Assembly: GCF_001194135.2 (NCBI RefSeq)
Contig: NC_068982.1
Location: forward strand, 179,324,969 to 179,370,092
Length of the DNA stretch: 45,124 nt
Source of the DNA: Octopus bimaculoides
Taxonomy: Eukaryota
Direction: 5' to 3'
Made by a program: the position numbers and the translations under genes. The notes beneath the pieces were generated by a model. The model did not search any database. It saw nothing but the letters and a program-made list of their open reading frames with translations, and was not told the origin of the DNA. This document shows, one piece after another, positions 1,950 through 45,124 of this stretch (its first letter is position 1; each line of letters starts with the position of its first letter).

Positions 1950-2545
1950 GTGCTTTAGAAAGCCCGTACAATGCCAATTGAAAAGCTGAGAATGAAAGAT
2001 AATAAACCAAAATAAATTTCTCGTTTGGAGAAGCCTAATTTCTCAAGATTGGTATTTAGGCAATGTGTTACCTATCTCAGAGCCCCAATAATTACAGGCA
2101 TAAACCTGAACTTGTAATCTGGATAGAGTAACAGCAGATTTCGCAATAGTTCATCATAGGTGTTCTCTTTTTCACTGATCTTCAGCTTTATGTTAACATC
2201 CGCTGGGCAGCTAATTTCCACAACTGTGAACAGTTTCTCTTCTCTGTCCCAAATCTTTACATCAGGTTTGTTGTGCTCACATTTTATTGAGGTCTTCACT
2301 GGTACATTCCGGTTTTCCTATCAATAACTTGAATCTCATCAAGCGTCCAGTCAAGCAGCCCAAATGTTAGTATGAGTACTGGCACTGCAAACACATTGTG
2401 AGCCACTGAATGTAGAGAGTTCTTAGGTCCAAAGTTTCGTTATTCGGCTGTATTGTTCTTTAGTAACACGTGTTTTGTTACAGTTGCCATTGTAAGATAT
2501 ATTTTCACCCACCCCTAGATACTTGTAACATTCCTCATCAGATGT
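1950..2545 (-). mobile_element. R4/Dong/NeSL-type RLE non-LTR retrotransposon fragment, internally deleted
   Basis: EECYKYLGVGENI and AHNVFAVPVLILTFGLLDWTLDEIQVIDRKT (RT thumb) are joined directly to NVPVKTSIKCEHNKPDVKIWDREEKLFTVVEISCPAD...PVIIGAL (restriction-like endonuclease, PD..D..E motif). Confidence 0.8.
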
Positions 2546-3629: not shown

Positions 3630-3755
3630 TGGGTGTGTGTATAATATGCATAATATGGAGAAAGTGAGAGAAATAGATGAGTACATACATATTTACATAT
3701 ACACCAATATACCATACATACATTTGCAATCATGAATACATAGAAAAGGAAAGAG

Positions 3756-5340: not shown

Positions 5341-5530
5341 TTTTACTTGTTTCAGTCATTGGACTACGACCATGCTGGGGCGCCGCCTTGAAGGGTTTTT
5401 AGTCAAACGAATCAAAGCTAATACTTACTTTTAAATCTGGTACTTATACTATAGGTAACATAAACAAGCCAGAACCGATTCTCAAGAGACGGAAGGGGAT
5501 AAACACAAGTACACAGACACATACACACAA
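5341..5530 (-). mobile_element. SINE (family B here) 3' part
   Basis: Tail AAGGCGGCGCCCCAGCATGGTCGTAGTCCAATGACTGAAACAAGTAAAA on the minus strand; aligns with 12540-12915 and 38670-38875. Confidence 0.75.
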
Positions 5531-6066: not shown

Positions 6067-6594
6067 ATATANNNNNNNNNNNNNNNNNNNNNNNNNNNNN
6101 NNNNNNNNNNNNNNNNNNNNNNNNNNNNNNNNNNNNNNNNNNNNNNNNNNNNNNNNNNNNNNNNNNNNNNNNNNNATATATATATATATATATATATAAT
6201 AGCCCAAATATAAGGTTAAAGAATTAAGGTTAAGACAATACGTGTTAAACACATTATCGAAACCTTATTTCAGGGTAAGTCCCAGATTGTGTGTCCATGG
6301 GGCATGTTCACCACTTATTGCTACCAGGCATCATCTACGATACTTAGCAGACATTGTTGTAATAATTCCACAAATTCCAGGATGGACGTTGGGTATGTAT
6401 TAAAGATAAAAAGAGAAGACGTAATGTATCAACAAAAAAATTTATATTACCATCTTCAAGATGCACTGCTCCCTTGTGGGAGTGGAACGACGCAATAACA
6501 CCAGATACAACGCACAGTGCATAGAAGACTCCTCATGTGGGACAATAAGGTTTTAAGCTGGGAGATTTACATTTGACTTTATATATTTATACAT

Positions 6595-6730
6595 GACGGA
6601 CTTTCAGTTTTTGCCAACCAAATCCACTCACAAGGTTTTGATCTACTCGGGGCTATAGTCGAAAACACTTGCTCAAGGGCTGGAGCTGGAACCAAGTGTT
6701 TGGGAAACAAATTTCTTACCAACACAGACA
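6595..6730 (-). mobile_element. SINE family B 5' part (degenerate)
   Basis: Its reverse complement aligns with the head of 12540-12680 (GCAAGTGTTTTCGACTATAGCC...CCTTGTGAGTGGATTTGG...CTGAAAG). Confidence 0.6.
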
Positions 6731-7367
6731 CTCCTGCACCTATATCTTATTTATTCATTTATTCATTCATTTATTGTTAAGACCTTGTGCTTGCCCTCAT
6801 GAATAATCCACTTCACTCCCTATTCCCATCCCTTACAATATTTTGTATATATCCTTGCTCTTCAAAAGTAGCGAAGTGTAGGCTAGATACTGACTGCTGT
6901 TTCTATAATGTCGAGGGATCACTTAGAAAAACTATGCAATCGGAATAGATTGAGAAATTTTTAACATACTGCGTTGACACTTGCCGCTAATTTGCTAGCA
7001 GCATAATTTCCAGTGATTTGGAAAACAGAGTCTGTTATCACAGTGGCATATATAATGTAAAGAAATAGACAAAACAAAAGTGCCGAGCGAACTTTTGTTA
7101 ATCCTTTGTATTCATCAATATGACTACGGCGCTGCTATTACAGAGAGTGCAGTTTAAGATTTAGAAGCTGGGGTTAAGAAGTTTCTCTTCCACCTGAGTA
7201 GATTAACTTTCGACAAGTGATTTTATGGTTTATTTTTGGGACAACTAACAATACAGTATAAAATAATAAATATACTAGGATATATAATGGTACAGAGCAC
7301 TCAGCCGGAGTTTGAGAAGTCCAGCGTTCGATTTTCTGTGGAGGTTTGCTAGCCACTTTTTTTTTAA

Positions 7368-12539: not shown

Positions 12540-12915
12540 AGGCAAAAGCTGTGTGCTTAAGAAACTAGCTTTGCGACTACATGGTTTCAGGTTCAGTCCC
12601 GCTGCGTGGCATCTTGAGAAAGTGTCTTCTACTATAGTCCTGAGCTGACCAATCTTGTGAATGAATTTGGCTGAAAGAAGATATGTGGAAGTACGTCGTA
12701 TGTGTATATGTTTGTGTTTGTGTACGCTCTCCACCGCTGGACAGCAGATGTTTGTTAATGTCCTCATAACCTAGCAGTTCGGCAAATGAAACCAAAAGAA
12801 TAAATACTAGGTTTAAATGACAAGACCTTGAGTTCATTTGTTCGATTAAACCGTTGAAGTTGATACCCTAGCATGACCGCAGTCGAAGGAGTGATTAAGT
12901 AAAAGAAATATAAAA
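12540..12915 (+). mobile_element. Near full-length tRNA-derived SINE (family B)
   Basis: Degenerate Pol III-like head (GCTGTGTGCTTAAG...GGTTCAGTCCC), central TG-rich part, and 3' tail CCCTAGCATGACCGCAGTC...AAGTAAAAG; matches partial copies elsewhere in the window. Confidence 0.75.
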
Positions 12916-13154: not shown

Positions 13155-15528
13155 CAGTTTCACTTATTCGATGAACTGAATTGCTCGGTTAAATTAACGT
13201 GTAGTTAGATGAGTATTCGATTGACACGTGGCACATACTTCGAGCAAGATCAAAGTGACACGATATGCGATAAAGCTGAATGTTTCAGTTACATGTACAA
13301 CCAATTCGGCGGACATCTACCCAATTTTCGTCTTCTTAATTTTACTCAAAATATTTGGTAAATATGAGATTATAGAAGAAGACACTGGCCCAAGATGCTA
13401 TATTGTGAGATCAAAAGCCTGGATCTTCTGATTGCAAAGTAATCTTTTCAACGACTTTGTCATGTCTGGATCCAACGTGGTATACATCAATTATCAACTA
13501 CTCCTATTTTTCCTCTTTTTCTTCGGTCTACCACAAATGAATCTCATTCTTAAATAATATTTTAAAGTATTGTCTGTTTCTTCGTCATGAGGAACTGGAA
13601 GATCCACCATTAAAATACAATCTTACTAAATCATTATTTTATGGCACATTTGAAGAAGTAGGATCTGTGCCCATAATATAGTTTGGCTTTCCCAGATTGG
13701 TCAAATTGATGCGATTGTTATATATCTTTAACATATGGCTGACTTAGATAGAAAAAAACGTAGGCTGGAACGGAAACTGAAAAGCATTGTTGCTATAGAA
13801 AAAGTGGATTGGGCAATGCTTTTTATACGGATGACAATGATGGAGAGATATTGTCATGGAGTGCTACGTGGAGAGAGATTTCAATATCTAGTTTAGAAGA
13901 ACAGAGTCTGATAGTGTAACAATAGATTGGCAATAGAAAAAAACGGTGCCTGACATGGATATTTTAGTGTATTGATAAATTAATCATTGTCAATAATCGA
14001 GAGGCAATACTATCTCAAGTGTGACAGGTATATATCAAGGGAGGTAATATTTCAGTTTTGTAAAAGGTCGGCAACGGATGAGTGCTGAAGTATTTTCTGG
14101 TGCTTAACTGTATTTGAAATGAAATTGTTGTTGCCAGTATATGTAGTAATTTTATACCAATACGATAACACAAGTCTACAATAATGTTGCTTTTTGTGAA
14201 GGTGAAGAAAATTTTAGGGGAAGTTTGGCACTCGGATTTCTAATACAACACTTTTATCTAACACGTCGACTTTAATCACTAAGCACCACAGGTCAGGAGC
14301 ACGAAATTATCCACTTTTGGCATTTTAGGAAATATACCGGTGGTTTTAATTCTTTGTTTCAAAGCATTCTTTTAATTCAAATTTGAAGTAGCACCTGCAA
14401 GACATTTTACGATGAAATCAAGTTAATTTCTTATAAAGCCAGTATGCCACATATACCTAGTGGATATATTACAAGATTGTAACAAGGGAACGAGATTGTA
14501 AAGTAATGAGCCAATAAAAGACAGATATTTAACCTAACCTCGCTTTCAAGCTGTCAATGAAAATTGCCATTTGTCTTATTCGCATTCACATCACATTGCA
14601 TTAACGTTATAACATTAAACAAAGTCATCTTCCATATGTTGACAAAAATATGTTGTCATCAGAGTTACATTTATTCGTCTTTGACCTTGAAAATACTATT
14701 GAGACCTTTGTAAGATTTAATTCGAGGCCAAAATCATCTAATTTAAACTGAGTGAATGAGTTCGGTAAGCTTGAATCACCCGGTGACTTATACTAGAATA
14801 TAGCCCAATAAAAACATTCTCCAGATTAACTGTCTGAAATAGAATATTTTTCTATATTATTTGGGAAATACCTAGAACCTGAGAATATTAGTAAATACCT
14901 TTTATTACTTTAGGGTCTATTTTCATTAAAAACTACAGCTCTGTTAGAGAATATGATATCGATTTCAACTGATGACGTTACCTCAATGATTGGAAGGCAA
15001 AATGCCCTGTAGCATTAAAATTATATCTTGAAATTATGGCGTTGCATTAAAATGTTCATAATTACAATCTAGGAGTAAAACCATGGGACCATGAGACTTA
15101 TTTTCAAACATTCACATGGTAAAGATATTACAACAATGAAATAAAATCACGTAGTAAATGCGATCACCTATTCAGGATCATTTTTCTCTGAACATTATAA
15201 ACAATATATATAAACAAATATATAAGACTGCTCTTTCATATGAAAGTCTGATGGCTCTCCAGTGGAAATTGCTTAGCAAGAGTTATAAAACTTTTTACAC
15301 CATAGTTATCACTCTAGGATACGAAGGGTATTAAGATATTAGTAAAGAAATTTGAAAGCTTAAAAATAACTTATTATCTAGCTTCGATATTTCGAAAGTT
15401 TAATGAGGTATGACATCAACTTCAAGGAAAAATCAATACGCTGATTGGTTGTAAAAATCTTTTGAAAGGATTTACTGAACAACTGGAAAAATTTCAAGTC
15501 AGTTTACTTCAGAAAAATATTTCCCAGC

Positions 15529-15542
15529 ATACTTCAACTATA
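15529..15542 (+). repeat. Target-site duplication, left copy (ATACTTCAACTATA)
   Basis: Identical 14-mer at 15977-15990. Confidence 0.9.
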
Positions 15543-15622
15543 CAGTTCTATATTTAAGAGATGAAGAATTATGTTACATTATTTACATTTGACGGATATT
15601 TGTCCTCATCTTGCTGGTTGTT

Positions 15623-15668
15623 AACACAACGTTTCGGCTGATATACCCTCCAGCCATCATCAGGTGTC
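15623..15668 (-). ncRNA. Minimal type I hammerhead ribozyme motif
   Basis: Minus strand GACAC-CUGAUGA-U-GGCUG(GAGGGUAUAU)CAGCC-GAAAC-GUU-GUGUU. Stem I GACAC/GUGUU, intact CUGAUGA and GAAA cores, 5-bp stem II, loopless palindromic helix III (ACGU), predicted cleavage after GUU. Confidence 0.8.
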
Positions 15669-15716
15669 TTGGGGAAATTTCGAATCTGGGTTCTCATGCC
15701 TAAGGTATTTTTTCGA

Positions 15717-15747
<31 letters not shown>

Positions 15748-15786
15748 GTTGTTGTTGTTGTTGTTGTTGTTGAATCTGTTGTTGTT

Positions 15787-15861
15787 CAGGTCACTGCCTG
15801 GAATCGAACTCGGAATCTTGGGGTTAGTAGCCCGCGCTCTTAACCACTACGCCATATGCCC
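15787..15861 (-). promoter_or_regulatory. tRNA-derived head with Pol III A and B boxes (not a functional tRNA)
   Basis: A box TGGCGTAGTGG, anticodon-like arm GCGGG-CTACTAA-CCC, B box GAGTTCGATTCC; the acceptor stem does not close properly. Confidence 0.8.
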
Positions 15862-15976
15862 ACAGACATGTGGCGTAGTGGTTAAGAGCGCGGGCTACTA
15901 ACCCCAGCCGAAACGTTGTATTAACAACAAACAAGATGAGGGCAGATATTCGTCAAATGTAAATTATGTAAATAAT

Positions 15977-15990
15977 ATACTTCAACTATA
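15977..15990 (+). repeat. Target-site duplication, right copy
   Basis: Identical to 15529-15542. Confidence 0.9.
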
Positions 15991-16574
15991 TTTTTCACTT
16001 TACAAAACAGATCCTGAAGCGTATTCTGGATTCCTGTTATCGTTAAAAACTGATATGAACAAATGCGTCTCAGATTTGTTTTCCTTTGAAGTACAGCTAT
16101 AGAGGATAAATCCATTAAATTGTGACGTTTCTTCCGGTGAAGAATAATAAATTCCATAACAATATTCAAAACGAATAAATTCCATAACGATATTATTATG
16201 AATTAAAAAAGATGTATGATAAAGTTGGTAAAACTGAATTTTGGTCATTAAAATACTGTAAAACACTATATCTAAGAGCATAGACCAAAACTGCCAAAAT
16301 TATTATTTGTTCTTCGAATGTATATAGAGTTGAAACTGGAGTGAGTGTAGAGAAGAAATTAATAAATTAAGAAATAGATTATATGCAAAAGGGGTGATAT
16401 AAAAAATTTAGCTCGGTGTTACTGAACTGACCATTGCATATTCGGAAAGGAAAAAACAAAAAACAAACCAAAACACCTATCGCAAGGATCTCATTAAATA
16501 TAATATTCATCTATAAAATTTTTATATTACTTTCTATTTGAGCAGGATGGACTACTCGATCTGAAAAAATTTCT

Positions 16575-16750: not shown

Positions 16751-16769
16751 AATACTAATAATAATAATG

Positions 16770-16854
<85 letters not shown>

Positions 16855-16873
16855 TAATAATAATAATAATAAT
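16751..16873. repeat. (AAT)n microsatellite
   Basis: Seen directly. Confidence 0.98.
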
Positions 16874-17821
16874 AGGACTCAAAGCAGAGACTGAAGGATT
16901 TTTAATTGCTGCACAAGACCAGAGCCTCCCCACCAGAAATTACCAAAAACACATAATGAAAAGAAATATAACAAGTAACTGCAGAATATGTGGAGATCGA
17001 CAAGAAACAATAAATCATNNNNNNNNNNNNNNNNNNNNNNNNNNNNNNNNNNNNNNNNNNNNNNNNNNNNNNNNNNNNNNNNNNNNNNNNNNNNNNNNNN
17101 NNNNNNNNNNNNNNNNNNNNNNNNNNNNNNNNNNNNNNNNNNNNNNNNNNNNNNNNNNNNNNNNNNNNNNNNNNNNNNNNNNNNNNNNNNNNNNNNNNNN
17201 NNNNNNNNNNNNNNNNNNNNNNNNNNNNNNNNNNNNNNNNNNNNNNNNNNNNNNNNNNNNNNNNNNNNNNNNNNNNNNNNNNNNNNNNNNNNNNNNNNNN
17301 NNNNNNNNNNNNNNNNNNNNNNNNNNNNNNNNNNNNNNNNNNNNNNNNNNNNNNNNNNNNNNNNNNNNNNNNNNNNNNNNNNNNNNNNNNNNNNNNNNNN
17401 NNNNNNNNNNNNNNNNNNNNNNNNNNNNNNNNNNNNNNNNNNNNNNNNNNNNNNNNNNNNNNNNNNNNNNNNNNNNNNNNNNNNNNNNNNNNNNNNNNNN
17501 NNNNNNNNNNNNNNNNNNNNNNNNNNNNNNNNNNNNNNNNNNNNNNNNNNNNNNNNNNNNNNNNNNNNNNNNNNNNNNNNNNNNNNNNNNNNNNNNNNNN
17601 NNNNNNNNNNNNNNNNNNNNNNNNNNNNNNNNNNNCAGGACTTACAAATATATATAACATACAGAAAATTGCACTACTGGGTACTGCACACATTCTACGC
17701 AAAACACTTTCATTACAGTAAACATAAGAGCACCACAACAAACCACAGCACATACCCAAGGCGCACAGAGCTGCGCTCGGTAGTGAAGTGAAAGCACGTT
17801 ATAAAAATAAAACTACTGAAC
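16874..17821 (+). mobile_element. 5'-truncated R4/Dong-like RLE LINE between (AAT)n arrays
   Basis: GLKAETEGFLIAAQDQSLPTRNYQKHIMK...CRICGDRQETINH (zinc knuckle start), N gap, then GLTNIYNIQKIALLGTAHILRKTLSLQ*, a 3' UTR with hairpin GCGCA-CAGAGC-TGCGC, and an (AAT)n tail. Confidence 0.9.

Positions 17822-17889
<68 letters not shown>
17822..17889. repeat. (AAT)n tail / target array
   Basis: Seen directly. Confidence 0.97.
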
Positions 17890-20174: not shown

Positions 20175-20345
20175 GGATAATAATAATAACAATAACAACA
20201 ACAACAACAACAATAATAACAATAATAACAACAATAATAATGATAAAGTTTTCAAATTTTGGCACAAGGCCAGTAAATTCGAGGGCAAAGTAAGTCGATT
20301 GGATTGACTCCAGGGTACAAATGGGATGAAAGGATGAAAGGCATG
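20175..20345 (-). mobile_element. SINE family A 3' fragment with (TTA/TTG)n tail
   Basis: TTTCAAATTTTGGCACAAGGCCAG...AAGTCGAT...GACTCCAG...GAAAGGATGAAAGGC matches 22212-22320 and 38162-38290. Confidence 0.65.
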
Positions 20346-25456: not shown

Positions 25457-25643
25457 ATGTAAGCGTGTGAGTTTGTGTGTGCGTGCATATGTGAAAGAAA
25501 CAGACAAATTACTTTAAATACACAAAAAATATAATTGAGATTTTCGGCGGTCATTCCTCGGCTTAGTGTATCTTTTGTATAACTGGAATAAATGTATGGT
25601 AAGAAGTGTCTAGACAATTGTTCTTTGTTACATGTTCTTTTTA

Positions 25644-26927
25644 TTAGGTTGTCAAGAAAGGTCTTGCTGTTTTTAACCTTTAAATTCAGATGTACATATC
25701 TCGGCTGAAACAAAACTTTATTAATCGAAATAAACACCATCAGAATCAACACACTTTTGCCAATGCAAAACAAGTTTATTTATGCCAGTAACGTAAAAAT
25801 CCTGCGTTCTGGTGGCGATGAAGTCGTTGAAGGCGTGTTTGGCATCGTCTTGGTTTTTGAAGCATTTCTCATGCAGGAAGTTGTCGAGATGCTTGAAAAA
25901 ATGGTAGTCGGTAGGCGAGAGGTCTGGTGAATATGACGGATGAGGCAGGGTTTCGTAGCCCAATTCGTTCAACTTCTGCTGGGTCAGTTGTGCGACGTGC
26001 GGCCGAGCGTTGTCGTGAAGAAGAATTGGTCCTTTTCTATTGACCAATGCTGGCTGTTGTCGGAGTTTCTTATGCATTTCATCCATTTACTGACCGTACT
26101 TCACCGTAATGGTTTCGCCTGGATCCAAAAAAGCTGTGATAGATGAGACCGGCCGCAGACTACCAAACAGTCACCATGACCTTCTTTTGGTGCAAATTTG
26201 GCTTCGAGAAGTTCCGTGGAGCTTCGTCGGTGTCTAACCACTGAGCTGAGCGTCGCCGGTAATCGTAAAGAATCCACTTTTCATCGTAAGTCAAAATCTG
26301 GTTGAGAAACGGGTCGTTCTTGTTGCGTAAAAGAAGGGAAGACGACACTTCAAAACGGCGTTTTTTTTTTTGTAATCGTTCAATTCGTGCGGCACCCATT
26401 TCTCAAGTATTTTTGTTTTTCTAATCTCTTTCAAGTGGTTGAAAATTATCGTATACGTTACGTCTAATTCAGAAGCAAGCTCTCGAACAGTTGTGCGTGG
26501 ATCGGCTTCCACTAAGGCTCTTAGTTGATCGTTGTCAACATCCGATGGCCGACCACTACACTTATCATCTTCAAGACTCTTGTCACCGCTACGAAATTTC
26601 TTGAACCACTATTGTGCTGTACGTTCATTAGTGGTTCCTGTGCCAAACGCATCGTTGATATCGCGAGATGTTTCAGGAGCTTTTCGGCCTAGCTGAACTG
26701 GAATAAGAAAACGATCGTCGATTTGCTTTTTCTCTATGTTGTATTCAAAATTCCGGGAAAAAATGGCCTAATTATTCAAAAAGAAAAAGAGCAACACGAT
26801 TAAATAGAGTGAAAAACGGGCTTTAAATTGATATATGAAGTCAAACTAATTTAACGAAAATTAATTTGAAAATACATCATTTAAACCCAAAATTAAAAAT
26901 TCCGCAAGAACTTTCTTGACAACCTAA
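25644..26927 (-). mobile_element. Full-length (1284 bp) mariner transposon, cecropia/Hsmar1-like
   Basis: TIRs TTAGGTTGTCAAGAAAG(G/T)TCTTGC at both ends, TA dinucleotide on each side (25642-25643, 26928-26929), and a transposase remnant inside. Confidence 0.95.
25721..26737 (-). pseudogene. Disrupted mariner DD34D transposase
   Basis: HTH region WFKKFRSGD.SLED..SGRP, WVPHEL, TYDEKWILYD, HDNARPH, YSPDLSPTDYHFF. Start appears mutated to ATA; in-frame TAG near 26610; several frameshifts. Confidence 0.93.
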
Positions 26928-28455
26928 TAACATAGCTCTATGCAACAACCATATGTTTCTGCTTATAATTAAACAAATTGCATTTCATACCATATATGGA
27001 AGAAATTGCAATATATAGTCGCGAAGCATTTTATCAGCCTTATCAATAAGTTGTGTATTAATCATATTCTCTTTGTTTACTGATTTAATTTCATGTTTTC
27101 ATCTATTAAAATATGCGAACTAGCATATTAACATTAAAGAAGTGGGCTACATGTTTTTATAACTTTTCATATTCAGTCTCGGGAGAAATTATTTTCAAAT
27201 GAACATTCTAGTCCCTATGTACTAGAGATATTGTTTTAATGTATATTCAGTTTAAATTTATGTAGACTGAGCTCTTGATGAACCGGCTGGGGATGAGGGA
27301 TGAATGAATAGCAGAGGGCTGCTGGAATTCTTAAGAGAATAAACAAAGCAAGGAGACAAGTGAGGATATGGAGCAAAACACAGTAATAGTGTCGACATGA
27401 TGTGTGTATAGATAGAAAAAAGGGTTTTGTCGTTTGGTACTTCAAAATAGTAGAGACTATTAAAAGTAGTAGCAGAAAAATGAAAGGTACGTTTTTGTGC
27501 CAATGTTAAACCTGTTGAATTGGCGGCGGAGATTAAGTCAAGATTTACTGGCTAATAGGGTGCCACTCAGGACTACCACTGTATCAGTGGATATTCGTTG
27601 CAATATTCGTTTTTATGTGCTACAGAGGATGATCCTGATACTAAAATCTGTAGCTCATTATCTGAAGAGTTGAGATTCCCCTTAAACAAATTCACGCCGT
27701 TGTCAATTCGTGCAACAAATAGTCTTCAACAGTTAAAAACTGAAAATCTCGGCTATGAGTGATGTCCGTCGATAATAATGTGTATGTGTCTTTGTATATG
27801 TTTGTGTGCGTGTCTCATATGTATATATATGTACATGCATATGTGGATATACATACATATATGTATATATATATANNNNNNNNNNNNNNNNNNNNNNNNN
27901 NNNNNNNNNNNNNNNNNNNNNNNNNNNNNNNNNNNNNNNNNNNNNNNNNNNNNNNNNNNNNNNNNNNNNNNNNNNNNNNNNNNNNNNNNNNNNNNNNNNN
28001 NNNNNNNNNNNNNNNNNNNNNNNNNNNNNNNNNNNNNNNNNNNNNNNNNNNNNNNNNNNNNNNNNNNNNNNNNNNNNNNNNNNNNNNNNNNNNNNNNNNN
28101 NNNNNNNNNNNNNNNNNNNNNNNNNNNNNNNNNNNNNNNNNNNNNNNNNNNNNNNNNNNNNNNNNNNNNNNNNNNNNNNNNNNNNNNNNNNNNNNNNNNN
28201 NNNNNNNNNNNNNNNNNNNNNNNNNNNNNNNNNNNNNNNNNNNNNNNNNNNNNNNNNNNNNNNNNNNNNNNNNNNNNNNNNNNNNNNNNNNNNNNNNNNN
28301 NNNNNNNNNNNNNNNNNNNNNNNNNNNNNNNNNNNNNNNNNNNNNNNNNNNNNNNNNNNNNNNNNNNNNNNNNNNNNNNNNNNNNNNNNNNNNNNNNNNN
28401 NNNNNNNNNNNNNNNNNNNNNNNNNNNNNNNNNNNNNNNNNNNNNNNNNNNNNNN

Positions 28456-38594: not shown

Positions 38595-38669
38595 TTATAT
38601 TAGTAAATTAATACAATAATATAGCCAGAATCTCGTAAATAGTACTGACTTGGTATTTGCGTGAATATT

Positions 38670-38875
38670 CTCTTACTTGTTACAATCATTTGACTGTGGC
38701 CATGCTGGTGCACCGCCTTGTAGTCGAAGAAATTGACCCCTGGACTTATTCTTTGCAAGCGTAATGCTTATTCTATCGGTCTCATTTGCCGAAATGCTAG
38801 TTTACTGGGACGTACTCACACCAACATCGGTTGTCAAGCAATGGTTGTGGGGACAAACACAAACGCACACACTTA
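38670..38875 (-). mobile_element. SINE family B 3' half
   Basis: Aligns with 12715-12905; tail CAAGGCGGTGCACCAGCATGGCCACAGTC. Confidence 0.85.
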
Positions 38876-39629
38876 AATATATACATATGTGTGTGTATAT
38901 GTATATATATATATATATATGTATATGTATATGTATATGTATATATATATGTATATGTATGTATANNNNNNNNNNNNNNNNNNNNNNNNNNNNNNNNNNN
39001 NNNNNNNNNNNNNNNNNNNNNNNNNNNNNNNNNNNNNNNNNNNNNNNNNNNNNNNNNNNNNNNNNNNNNNNNNNNNNNNNNNNNNNNNNNNNNNNNNNNN
39101 NNNNNNNNNNNNNNNNNNNNNNNNNNNNNNNNNNNNNNNNNNNNNNNNNNNNNNNNNNNNNNNNNNNNNNNNNNNNNNNNNNNNNNNNNNNNNNNNNNNN
39201 NNNNNNNNNNNNNNNNNNNNNNNNNNNNNNNNNNNNNNNNNNNNNNNNNNNNNNNNNNNNNNNNNNNNNNNNNNNNNNNNNNNNNNNNNNNNNNNNNNNN
39301 NNNNNNNNNNNNNNNNNNNNNNNNNNNNNNNNNNNNNNNNNNNNNNNNNNNNNNNNNNNNNNNNNNNNNNNNNNNNNNNNNNNNNNNNNNNNNNNNNNNN
39401 NNNNNNNNNNNNNNNNNNNNNNNNNNNNNNNNNNNNNNNNNNNNNNNNNNNNNNNNNNNNNNNNNNNNNNNNNNNNNNNNNNNNNNNNNNNNNNNNNNNN
39501 NNNNNNNNNNNNNNNNNNNNNNNNNNNNNNNNNNNNNNNNNNNNNNNNTATATATATATATATATATATATATTATTTGACTGAACGCAACGCATCTATT
39601 TCCAAATAAGTTTATCTTAATCTTTTTAA

Positions 39630-40177
39630 TGCGACTCTACCCTATACTGTTCTCTACCCCTATCATTTTCTCGCTCACCCTTTCTCTAATTCCTCTTTTT
39701 CTCACCTTCACCGTTTTCTATCTGTCTCTTTCTTCCCTCTTTCTCCTTTATTCTCTCTCTCGTTGCTCACACATGACCATCGTCCATCTTTCCTTTCTTT
39801 CAGGGCTGTCCTAGAGGTTGGACATATCCTATCTATCTCTTTCTTCTATCTTTTCACTTGTCAAAGAAAATATTTCTCCAGTGTTCACTATTTTACCCTC
39901 GTTCTGGTCTAACAACCCTCCATCTTTGTTTTCATTCGGTTTCCTTGTATACGTCCACTATCCTGTTTTTGTTCCTAACTTTGACCCTCCATAAATCCCA
40001 AATTTAATTTTGGTATTTTTGTCGTTGAATGCTCGAAATTAGAAGAAGATAGGCTGCCGACAACTGATGAAGGGTCGTTCTTTATGTTACTTGTCCTGTT
40101 TCCCTTTTGTTTCTCTCGTTGTTTGCGTATTGTTTTCGTATTTCATGGCGTTTCCCGTTTGGGATGTCCTCTACCCA

Positions 40178-40180
<3 letters not shown>
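39630..40180 (+). mobile_element. Possible second Penelope-like terminal repeat family member
   Basis: Same order as the minus strand of 35066-35800: CT-rich tract, CTGATGAAGGG (40064), T-rich segment, then (TA)n. Direct sequence identity is low. Confidence 0.3.
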
Positions 40181-40243
<63 letters not shown>

Positions 40244-40246
<3 letters not shown>

Positions 40247-41215
40247 AGCTATGGAGACGATACAAAAGTCTCTCAGAGGATACAGAACTCTGGAGACGCT
40301 GCACATCTGCAACGTGAGTTGGACGCAGTATACAGATTGGTTGAGGAAAATAACATGCAGTATAATGTTGAGAAATTCCAAGCCCTGCGCTATCAACACA
40401 TGCAGCTCAATAAAAAGCAGATAGGATACACTGGCCCAGGAGGGATTGCAATCCCTGAATCAAAATCAGTGTGTGACCTGGACATCGAATGAGTAATGAT
40501 GCATCTTTCCAGGTGCATATTACCAACTGGACAATAAAATGCAGACGCTTGGCTGAATGAATCCTTTGAACTTTGAAAACGAGAGAGAAGGAAACCATGA
40601 TGCTCCTTTGGAGGACTTTCGTCCTCAGCCGTCTGGGTTACTGGTCCCAACTATGATCACCAAGCAGTGTAAAATTAACGTCAGAACTCGAAGCGATTCA
40701 ACGAAGCTACACAAAGACGATCAACACAATGCGACATACCAGCTTCTGAGAGAGACTGAAGTAGTTAAACTCTGCTTCTTAGAACGAAGGTGGGAAAGAT
40801 ACGCAGTAATATCATCTGGAAAATCCCAGTAAAACTTTATTAAACTTTGGCATAGTCATTTACACTAACAGCAGGACGGGGTACTTCTGCATCCCAACAT
40901 TGCCATTAGGATACAACACCAAATACTGCAACAACTTGGGCTTCAAGGGCCCACTGATCTTCAATACCCTCCCACAAAGCTTAAGAAACCTGCGTGGCGT
41001 GGATGTAGGTGTTTTCAAAGCAAAACATGATCTCTTTCTGTCAAGAGTTCCGGATGAACCTACCTGAAGGTAAGAAACACAGATGAAGGCAGCAACGTCA
41101 AACTCCCTCATCCATCAAATGTCACATATCACAGGAGGTTTAGTGAAAGTGAATCAAGGCGGTGCCCAGCATGGCCACAGTCCTCGGACTGAAACTAAAA
41201 GAATAAAGTAAAATA
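40244..41215 (+). mobile_element. 5'-truncated CR1-clade LINE (RT catalytic motif to 3' tail)
   Basis: SYGDDTK (~YADDTK), ENNMQYNVEKFQALRY, MLLWRTFVLSRL.YWSQL, ERRWERY, FKGPLIFNTLPQSLRNL...RVPDEP, RAATSNSLIHQ; stops and frameshifts; tail at 41155-41210. Confidence 0.92.
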
Positions 41216-44729: not shown

Positions 44730-45124
44730 TTATTATTATTATTGTTCAGTAGTTTTATTTTTATAACGTGCTTTCACTTCACTACCGAGCGCAGCTCTGT
44801 GCGCCTTGGGTATGTGCTGTGGTTTGCTGTGGTGCTCTTATGGTTACTGTATTGAAAGTGTTTTGCGTAGGATGTGTGCAGTGCCCAGCAGTGCAATTTT
44901 CTGTATGTTATATATATTTGTAAGTCCTGCTATTTTTGTTATGTATTTGTCTGAATATTTTTTTATTATACCTAAGGCACCTACTATGATAGGAATTGTT
45001 TCTGTTTTTAGATTCCACATTCGAGTTACCTCTATTTCCAGGTCTTTGTATTTTGAAAGTTTTTCCATTTCTTTTAGAGAAACGTTGTCATCTGCTGGTA
45101 TTGATACATCAATTAGAAAGCATT
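44730..45124 (-). mobile_element. Young R4/Dong-like RLE LINE 3' end (runs off the window)
   Basis: Open frame EKLSKYKDLEIEVTRMWNLKTETIPIIVGALG...LLGTAHILRKTLSIQ*; ~97% identical (6 differences in ~188 nt) to 17636-17825; short (AAT)n tail. Confidence 0.93.

Follow-up and report, generated by a model that had tools for sequence, protein, structure and literature searches.

Short interspersed elements (SINEs) are defined by their dependence on long interspersed element (LINE) partners. Other retroelements carry hammerhead ribozymes, and two groups of them are among the closest described systems for the locus studied here. Penelope-like elements (PLEs) have hammerheads without a helix III hairpin, for which dimers formed by a palindrome at positions 15.1-16.1 are believed to be the active form (Cervera & de la Pena 2014, PMC4209133). 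PLE insertions are 5′-truncated, often with an inverted 5′-truncated copy right at the 5′ end, and have a tail of 30-40 bp, frequently at one end only, together with a target duplication of variable length (Craig et al. 2021, PMC8557442). The PLE enzyme of Anolis acts on both DNA strands, cutting each and extending it (Frangieh et al. 2024, PMC11167929). Its reverse transcription has two internal start sites, one on either side of the tail; they lie 111-118 nt into an open reading frame (ORF) that begins 29 nt before the hammerhead cut, i.e. 82-89 nt past the cut, and hammerhead cleavage is dispensable for insertion (PMC11167929). The Drosophila PLE enzyme needs the tail sequence for recognition of its DNA target (PMC11167929). 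The second group is that of the schistosome SINE-like retroposons Sm-alpha and Sj-alpha, which combine a tRNA-derived RNA polymerase III (Pol III) promoter with a hammerhead (Ferbeyre 1998; Laha 2000, as summarised in PMC6765202, PMC2770079). We analysed a stretch of 45,124 nt of Octopus bimaculoides DNA (GCF_001194135.2, contig NC_068982.1, positions 179,324,969 to 179,370,092, forward strand), hereafter the window, which is AT-rich (30% GC), has many microsatellites and is a gapped draft with 5483 N. At 15529-15990 it holds a fold-back retroelement that had been singled out in a first-pass annotation. We consider it probable that the locus records one retrotransposition event of a short, non-autonomous, three-module element that was mobilised in trans by a PLE enzyme. 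The modules are a tRNA-related head with A and B boxes, an (AAC)n(AAT)n tract, and a 3′ module that appears to be homologous to a PLE minimal hammerhead and the sequence downstream of it. The locus is a real retro-insertion, and the element most likely a PLE-mobilised SINE.

The 14-bp sequence ATACTTCAACTATA has exactly two occurrences, at 15529-15542 and 15977-15990, which form an exact direct repeat, read here as a target-site duplication; each copy directly adjoins the outer end of one of two arms whose point of divergence is near 15862. The left arm (15543-15866, minus strand, 324 nt) is the full-length element, ending at the duplication and starting 11 nt before the A box. Its order in the sense direction is an 11-nt leader, A box, B box, the internal microsatellite (AAC)n(AAT)n (15719-15786, minus strand; reported by Tandem Repeats Finder as (TTA)n and (TTG)n arrays on the plus strand), a body of 50 nt (15669-15718, minus strand), a hammerhead of 46 nt and a 3′ part of 80 nt. 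The body, which is the interval between microsatellite and hammerhead, contains AGATTCGAAATTTCC, and this resembles GGTTCGAAGTTCC upstream of the hammerhead in a related locus, L004 (the related loci are described below). By arm alignment the 3′ part divides into a region common to both arms (15568-15622, minus strand), with a block AAGATGAGGACAA that is kept in the homologues of L004, L006 and L007, and a 25-nt 3′ tail TCTTCATCTCTTAAATATAGAACTG (15543-15567, minus strand) present in the left arm only. The right arm (15867-15976, plus strand, 110 nt), delimited by repeat search and arm alignment, is an inverted, 5′-truncated and internally deleted copy that adjoins the 5′ end of the left arm. 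It consists of left-arm sense positions 9-42, which belong to the head, fused to the 3′ region at about 225-299 (of 324 nt) via a 2-nt microhomology CA, the junction reading CCCC/AG/CCGAAAC. B box, microsatellite, body and the 5′ half of the hammerhead are missing from this arm, and it terminates 25 nt before the 3′ end of the left arm. The exact duplication around both arms and the order of parts in the left arm had been claimed in the first-pass annotation and are both seen; its claim that the element is non-coding also stands, with ORFs of at most 61 aa that are largely low complexity. Its picture of two heads diverging from about 15862 holds as far as the diverging arms are concerned, the right one being partial, with an A box and no B box. 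A direct repeat of element sequence, as expected of a pseudo-long terminal repeat (pseudo-LTR) or partial tandem copy, was not found in or around 15400-16100, nor was a second copy of the element present elsewhere in the window. Three more long (AAT)n-type arrays (16751-16874, 17822-17889 and 20177-20246) lie at most 5 kb away and match the microsatellite of the element only.

Between the arms there are two inverted repeats, one of 40 nt in the head part (15819-15858 / 15867-15906, 98% complementary with an 8-nt centre) and one of 67 nt in the 3′ region (15574-15640 / 15905-15971, 90% complementary). As plus-strand RNA the unit is predicted to be a long hairpin, as had been proposed, with a folding energy of -209 kcal/mol versus -105 ± 5.6 for shuffles (z -18.6). 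Long inverted repeats in a gapped draft might also be expected from a DNA-transposon derivative (a miniature inverted-repeat transposable element or fold-back element) or from a false palindrome made by the assembly. Arm alignment effectively refutes this explanation, to which we give next to no credence. At their outer ends the arms do not match as inverted repeats, with 25 extra nt unmatched at the left end and a 178-nt deletion between the arms. Over about 107 nt of alignment the arms also show 8 substitutions and one 1-nt indel, a divergence of about 8%, and such divergence in an asymmetric palindrome is unlike artefactual palindromes. To our knowledge there is no transposase family that fits a duplication of 14 bp. 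From the termini and the duplication length, the earlier view of a non-coding retro-insertion that is not of transposase type is upheld. At 15818-15907, three Rfam microRNA models (MIR5380, mir-885 and mir-571) match the 40-nt head palindrome below thresholds; a microRNA precursor at this position was rejected, these sub-threshold matches to hairpin look-alikes being false positives.

The ribozyme module was located by a descriptor for PLE minimal hammerheads, which gave a single match in the window (15668 to 15623, minus strand) and none in 300 shuffles; the covariance model R1 scores the same segment (15623-15668) at 66.6 bits. The motif is GACAC-CUGAUGA-U-GGCUGG-(8 nt)-UCAGCC-GAA-ACGU-U/GUGUU, where the slash marks the predicted cut. 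Helix I has 5 pairs (GACAC/GUGUU), and helix II has 6 pairs (GGCUGG/UCAGCC) with a closing G-C pair (G10.1-C11.1), as against the 7-8 pairs typical in Schistosoma. The core CUGAUGA spans 15663 to 15657 and is followed by an unpaired U at 15656 and by the later core GAAACGUU; H17 is the U at 15628, with the cut predicted between 15628 and 15627. The helix III hairpin is absent and a palindrome ACGU, which would permit dimers, occupies 15.1-16.1. The motif thus has every sequence feature of the PLE minimal type, for which the conserved cores are CUGANGA and GAAA, with U16.1 and an H17 other than G. An initial call of no hammerhead, made for want of the helix III hairpin, was overturned, as the motif belongs to the hairpin-less PLE type.

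Homologues of this hammerhead were found by BLAST and one pattern scan. Three of the loci (L004, L006 and L008) are from ENA assembly ERZ21867824, and the fourth, L007, is contig CBDHDV010000339.1, filed under a Rubritalea sp. metagenome-assembled genome (MAG). A covariance model trained on seven hammerheads recovers ten in all, nine of them beyond the window in these four loci, and the three matches outside the training set score 54-56 bits. Over the 10 homologues, 91.7% of the helix II cells are paired, compared with 14-44% in slid-partner controls. Two of its pairs change on both sides (17-31 and 18-30; C-G/U-A and G-C/A-U), and in two others (19-29 and 14-34) a one-sided change keeps the pairing, one pair going from G-U to A-U and another from G-C to G-U. 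The positions of the ACGU palindrome are paired in 95% of cells and an extra nucleotide stands at the unpaired-U position in all 10 homologues; N7, the bulged base and loop 2 vary freely among the ten. Taken over ten related sequences, these patterns give modest and consistent support to a conserved RNA structure. The first-pass annotation had pointed to the minimal hammerheads of Penelope-like elements, and assignment to this type is supported by the sequence features of the motif and by the structure-preserving changes among the homologues. Downstream of the ribozyme the homologues have the blocks AACAA, AAGATGAGGACAA and ATTCTTCA-CT in common with the window element. An AUG formed by A9-U-G10.1 was tried as PLE start codon, after Anolis Poseidon, and rejected as a conserved feature, its U being present in only 2 of 10 homologues. 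A 25-codon ORF MMAGGYISRNVVLTTSKMRTNIRQM (15583-15660, minus strand) begins inside the hammerhead core; a second ATG, within block AAGATGAGGACAA, is retained in 6 of 7 aligned homologues and may be where translation began in the parental PLE.

When the ends of the two arms are measured from the predicted cut, the left arm ends 85 nt and the right arm 60 nt past it, the difference being the 25-nt one-sided tail. The 3′ ends are thus about as far past the cut as the internal start of Anolis Poseidon, and dual hammerheads close by on opposite strands have been reported for Schistosoma PLEs (PMC4209133, PMC11167929). The 14-bp duplication is within the variable PLE range. Also, the target ATACTTCAACTATA is similar to the block ATTCTTCA(T/A)CT in the initial part of the tail, which reads ATTCTTCATCT in the window and ATTCTTCAACTAGTT in L007; the chance of such target likeness is about 0.004 by a rough post hoc estimate. 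In both arms the sequence continues over the predicted cut, so the template RNA was uncleaved. It would follow that the hammerhead is likelier to have been kept as a part of the RNA region recognised by the enzyme than for cleaving this transcript, and that self-cleavage was at best dispensable for this insertion.

The first-pass annotation had regarded palindromic integration as a property of the element. The head-to-head arms, the one-sided tail and the duplication length agree with what is published on PLE insertions, and head-to-head pairs recur in the related loci. The fold-back is best understood as a side effect of PLE-type integration with priming from both DNA strands, and not as a property of the element's own sequence. 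We infer the following order of events. Pol III would start about 11 nt before the A box, read through an element free of runs of four T and stop at the flanking run of five T. A trans-acting PLE reverse transcriptase with GIY-YIG endonuclease would then recognise the PLE-derived 3′ module, and both strands of an AT-rich target similar to the tail of the element would be nicked 14 bp apart. Two internal sites, one 85 nt and one 60 nt past the cut and so separated by about 25 nt, would serve for the priming of cDNA from both DNA ends. The cDNA of the left arm would reach the 5′ end of the RNA; that of the right arm would stall or jump at helix II and resume in the head. Joining of the two 5′ ends would give a head-to-head palindrome inside 14-bp duplications. 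With regard to the stalling step, the truncated arm starts in or just before the 3′ strand of helix II both at L008 15189-15283 (minus strand) and at window 15905 (plus strand) (GCTGAAAC / CAGCCGAAAC), and this stem may thus be one at which reverse transcription is prone to stall or jump.

A duplication of this length without terminal inverted repeats is compatible with any target-primed reverse transcription, so that a LINE-mobilised SINE inserted by twin priming must also be considered, with the hammerhead-like module an inert relic unrelated to mobility. In L1 twin priming, reportedly set out by Ostertag and Kazazian in 2001, both target strands are said to prime, leaving an inverted segment within one duplication pair and microhomology at the junction. 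Microhomology between target and RNA, which is expected in that case, is present here, and the window has non-LTR-like ORF remnants (40043-40489 and 44847-45122), although these are without a Pfam match. However, neither 3′ end carries poly(A) or a microsatellite. The second primer in L1 anneals upstream, so that the segments differ and the inverted one should derive from a more 5′ part of the RNA, whereas the arms of the window element share a start in the 3′ module. Moreover, the tail on one arm only, the conservation of a PLE-type hammerhead and the recurrence of head-to-head pairs in related loci are specific PLE traits, and we regard L1-type inversion as quite improbable at this locus.

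The proposed PLE-mobilised SINE further requires a promoter, for which the head (15787-15866, minus strand) is the candidate. Its A box (15854 to 15844, TGGCGTAGTGG) matches the consensus at 11 of 11 positions and its B box (15810 to 15800, AGTTCGATTCC) at 10 of 11, and their starts are 44 nt apart, a tRNA-like spacing. This A+B pair is the single one in the window and no such pair was seen in 300 shuffles; the only other A box is that of the right arm, at 15871. In the sense strand neither arm contains TTTT. The first run of five T past the full-length copy (15517 to 15513, minus strand) lies in the flank 26-30 nt beyond the left arm and is a candidate Pol III terminator, in keeping with the earlier statement that a run of four T is absent until just past the element. 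A second run of five T (15991-15995) immediately follows the right duplication. The SINE2 traits present are short length (324 nt), absence of coding sequence, the 14-bp duplication and internal A and B boxes.

The related loci show how far this design is general. In L006 a full copy comprises a 5′ unit of 119 nt, the body, the hammerhead and a 3′ part of 71 nt. An inverted 5′-truncated copy adjoins its 5′ end, with a 3′ end that extends about 65 nt further, and a possible decayed 11-bp duplication is seen. Judged from its sequence, L006 shows the design of the window independently and with a different 5′ unit, and the architecture therefore recurs in another genome. Diverging pairs are also formed by the hammerhead units of L004, L007 and L008, so that head-to-head pairs occur in all five hammerhead-bearing loci. 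The stretch in L007 (23-38% GC) has four PLE-type hammerhead units, tandem and inverted, with a period of about 290 nt, and is probably eukaryotic DNA of an invertebrate host that was binned in the bacterial MAG. An inverted hammerhead copy in it (3652-3692, plus strand) stops 0-2 nt from the predicted self-cleavage site, which falls at the end of GAAACGTT, and at the junction 3690-3693 the unit next to it follows with an A-rich 3′ end; such a junction could be the footprint of a ribozyme-cut RNA template in vivo. In L008, two diverging hammerhead units have nested between them a tRNA-derived SINE of 246 nt (15460-15705, within 15446-15719), which is bracketed by the exact 14-bp duplication TACTCTTGTGGATT, and the B-box region of this SINE, GGGTTCAATCCCAGGTAGTGAC, resembles that of the window head GAGTTCGATTCCAGGCAGTGAC.

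The 5′ parts differ among the related units (L004/L008, L006 and the window), from which it follows that the 3′ module is modular. Modularity fits SINE evolution and it fits as well a one-off chimera, in which a reverse transcriptase copying a PLE-derived hammerhead element of about 200 nt (cf. L004, L007, L008) switched template to a tRNA-SINE ending in (AAC)n(AAT)n, with no propagating family as a result. The joining of the 3′ module to differing 5′ units can be claimed for such a chimera, as can the likeness of the head's B-box region to that of the unrelated tRNA-SINE in L008. The microsatellite is placed exactly where a SINE has its 3′ tail, PLEs are reported to prefer microsatellite targets, and the DNA searched has no further copy of head plus hammerhead. 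Against this, the presence of head and 3′ module on both arms would need two independent jumps, or fold-back of a cDNA that was already chimeric, and the left arm starts at the Pol III distance from the A box, as a full-length composite transcript would. Because both arms hold head and 3′ module, we rate the template-switch chimera as unlikely.

Several observations nevertheless weigh against a PLE-mobilised SINE. ARAGORN finds no tRNA in the head at default or relaxed thresholds (at the 80% setting there is one dubious call of an intron-containing tRNA), and Rfam gives no tRNA family at E<=10 over 15400-16100, so that the head is to be called tRNA-related by its promoter boxes only. Rfam hammerhead families too have no match, be it at gathering thresholds or at E<=10, on 15400-16100, and none at E<=10 on L006, presumably because these models expect a helix III hairpin. 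At 25 nt the tail is shorter than the published 30-40. The internal microsatellite resembles an ordinary SINE 3′ tail, which would allow a one-off composite, and the loci related by their hammerheads belong to organisms other than that of the window. Of the loci fetched via mariner transposase matches, L001 alone is from O. bimaculoides and the others are from two ENA assemblies; the loci of these two assemblies have no other repeat family in common with the window, bar one isolated match in L011. A second copy of the head and hammerhead combination was not found in the 45-kb window plus 20 kb of O. bimaculoides (L001), which is a small fraction of octopus DNA, so that its absence there carries little weight. 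Six-frame pseudo-proteins of body and head gave no copies in a collection of 5.8 billion proteins, exact-pattern scans of viral contigs and JGI metagenomes gave no match, and a pattern scan of GTDB prokaryote genomes did not find the combination, L007 being its sole match. As to the partner, a motif scan limited to the window and L001-L003 detected no PLE ORF (GIY-YIG and YxDD motifs), and there is no PLE-like ORF near the L004 hammerhead.

Tentatively, and with somewhat less than even confidence, we extend the proposal to a multi-copy family of tRNA-promoter SINEs in cephalopods and other molluscs that would depend on PLEs and not on LINEs. Its copies would be footprints of dual-strand priming, of two internal starts and of tail-guided targeting, and the hammerhead would serve as an RNA handle and not for cleavage. 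These three PLE features have until now been seen only in vitro, for one lizard PLE (PMC11167929).

In comparison with PLEs, the window element is without an ORF for reverse transcriptase or GIY-YIG, without a pseudo-LTR and without a tandem copy, and its 5′ part is a putative Pol III promoter plus microsatellite. The likeness to Sm-alpha and Sj-alpha, drawn from their published descriptions, lies in the presence of promoter and hammerhead within one short non-coding retroposon. Sm-alpha has a canonical type I hammerhead that Rfam-type searches detect, is often tandem and has its promoter 3′ of the cut in processed units, whereas in the window element the minimal hammerhead of the 3′ module is of PLE type, and the element is non-tandem and went in as an inverted pair. 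Metazoan non-LTR retrozymes, together with short non-autonomous derivatives of PLEs (PMC7229834; bioRxiv 10.64898/2026.07.22.740005; PMC6685494), are likewise non-autonomous, hammerhead-bearing and AT-rich, with duplications >4 bp and a presumed use of PLE enzymes. However, retrozymes are tandem units of type I hammerheads with circular RNAs and no Pol III head has been described for them, while our element is a single unit with such a head, and only one complete hammerhead is present in the window in place of the tandem arrangement of a retrozyme. The L007 array, with its period of about 290 nt and both tandem and inverted units, looks like the retrozyme class.

In the literature searched (Repbase and Dfam not covered), we found no description, in cephalopods or elsewhere, of an element that couples a Pol III head of tRNA type with a PLE 3′ module and was integrated in the manner of PLEs. 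The parts are known already, namely PLE minimal hammerheads, inverted insertions with tails, hammerhead-bearing non-autonomous elements and the SINE-like promoter-hammerhead elements of schistosomes. The combination is therefore novel as a variant; it is not a new principle but a tidy natural illustration of the PLE mechanism. Until now retrozymes and Sm-alpha on the one hand and PLEs on the other have mostly been treated separately. If the proposal is true, the SINE concept would reach a third class of retrotransposons, and one locus of 450 bp would be a compact record of PLE integration, with the target, the two start sites and the two events of priming all in view. A near-perfect long hairpin would also bear on double-stranded RNA sensing and on cephalopod A-to-I editing if it lies in a transcribed region. 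For annotation practice, reliance on Rfam overlooks the entire class of hairpin-less hammerheads.

The window yielded no recognisable host gene, and its other repeats are of different kinds. Non-LTR-like ORF remnants occur at 2075-2317 (minus strand), 44847-45122 (minus strand), 40043-40489 (plus strand) and about 16900-17020 (plus strand), with stretches such as ...IPIIVGALG...LLGTAHILRKTL and ...YGDDTK..., and Pfam has no match for any of these fragments. In this Pfam comparison the only fragment recognised is a mariner-type one at 25642-26929 (minus strand) with HTH and DDE_3 domains; its best protein match is an O. bimaculoides annotation (86% identity), and at the DNA level it is about 86% identical to copies in L001 and ERZ21867824. 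Short interspersed repeats at 5341-5456, 6579-6752, 12548-12906 and 38664-38956 have several matches each in L001 (67-80% identity) and are abundant octopus families unrelated to the element.

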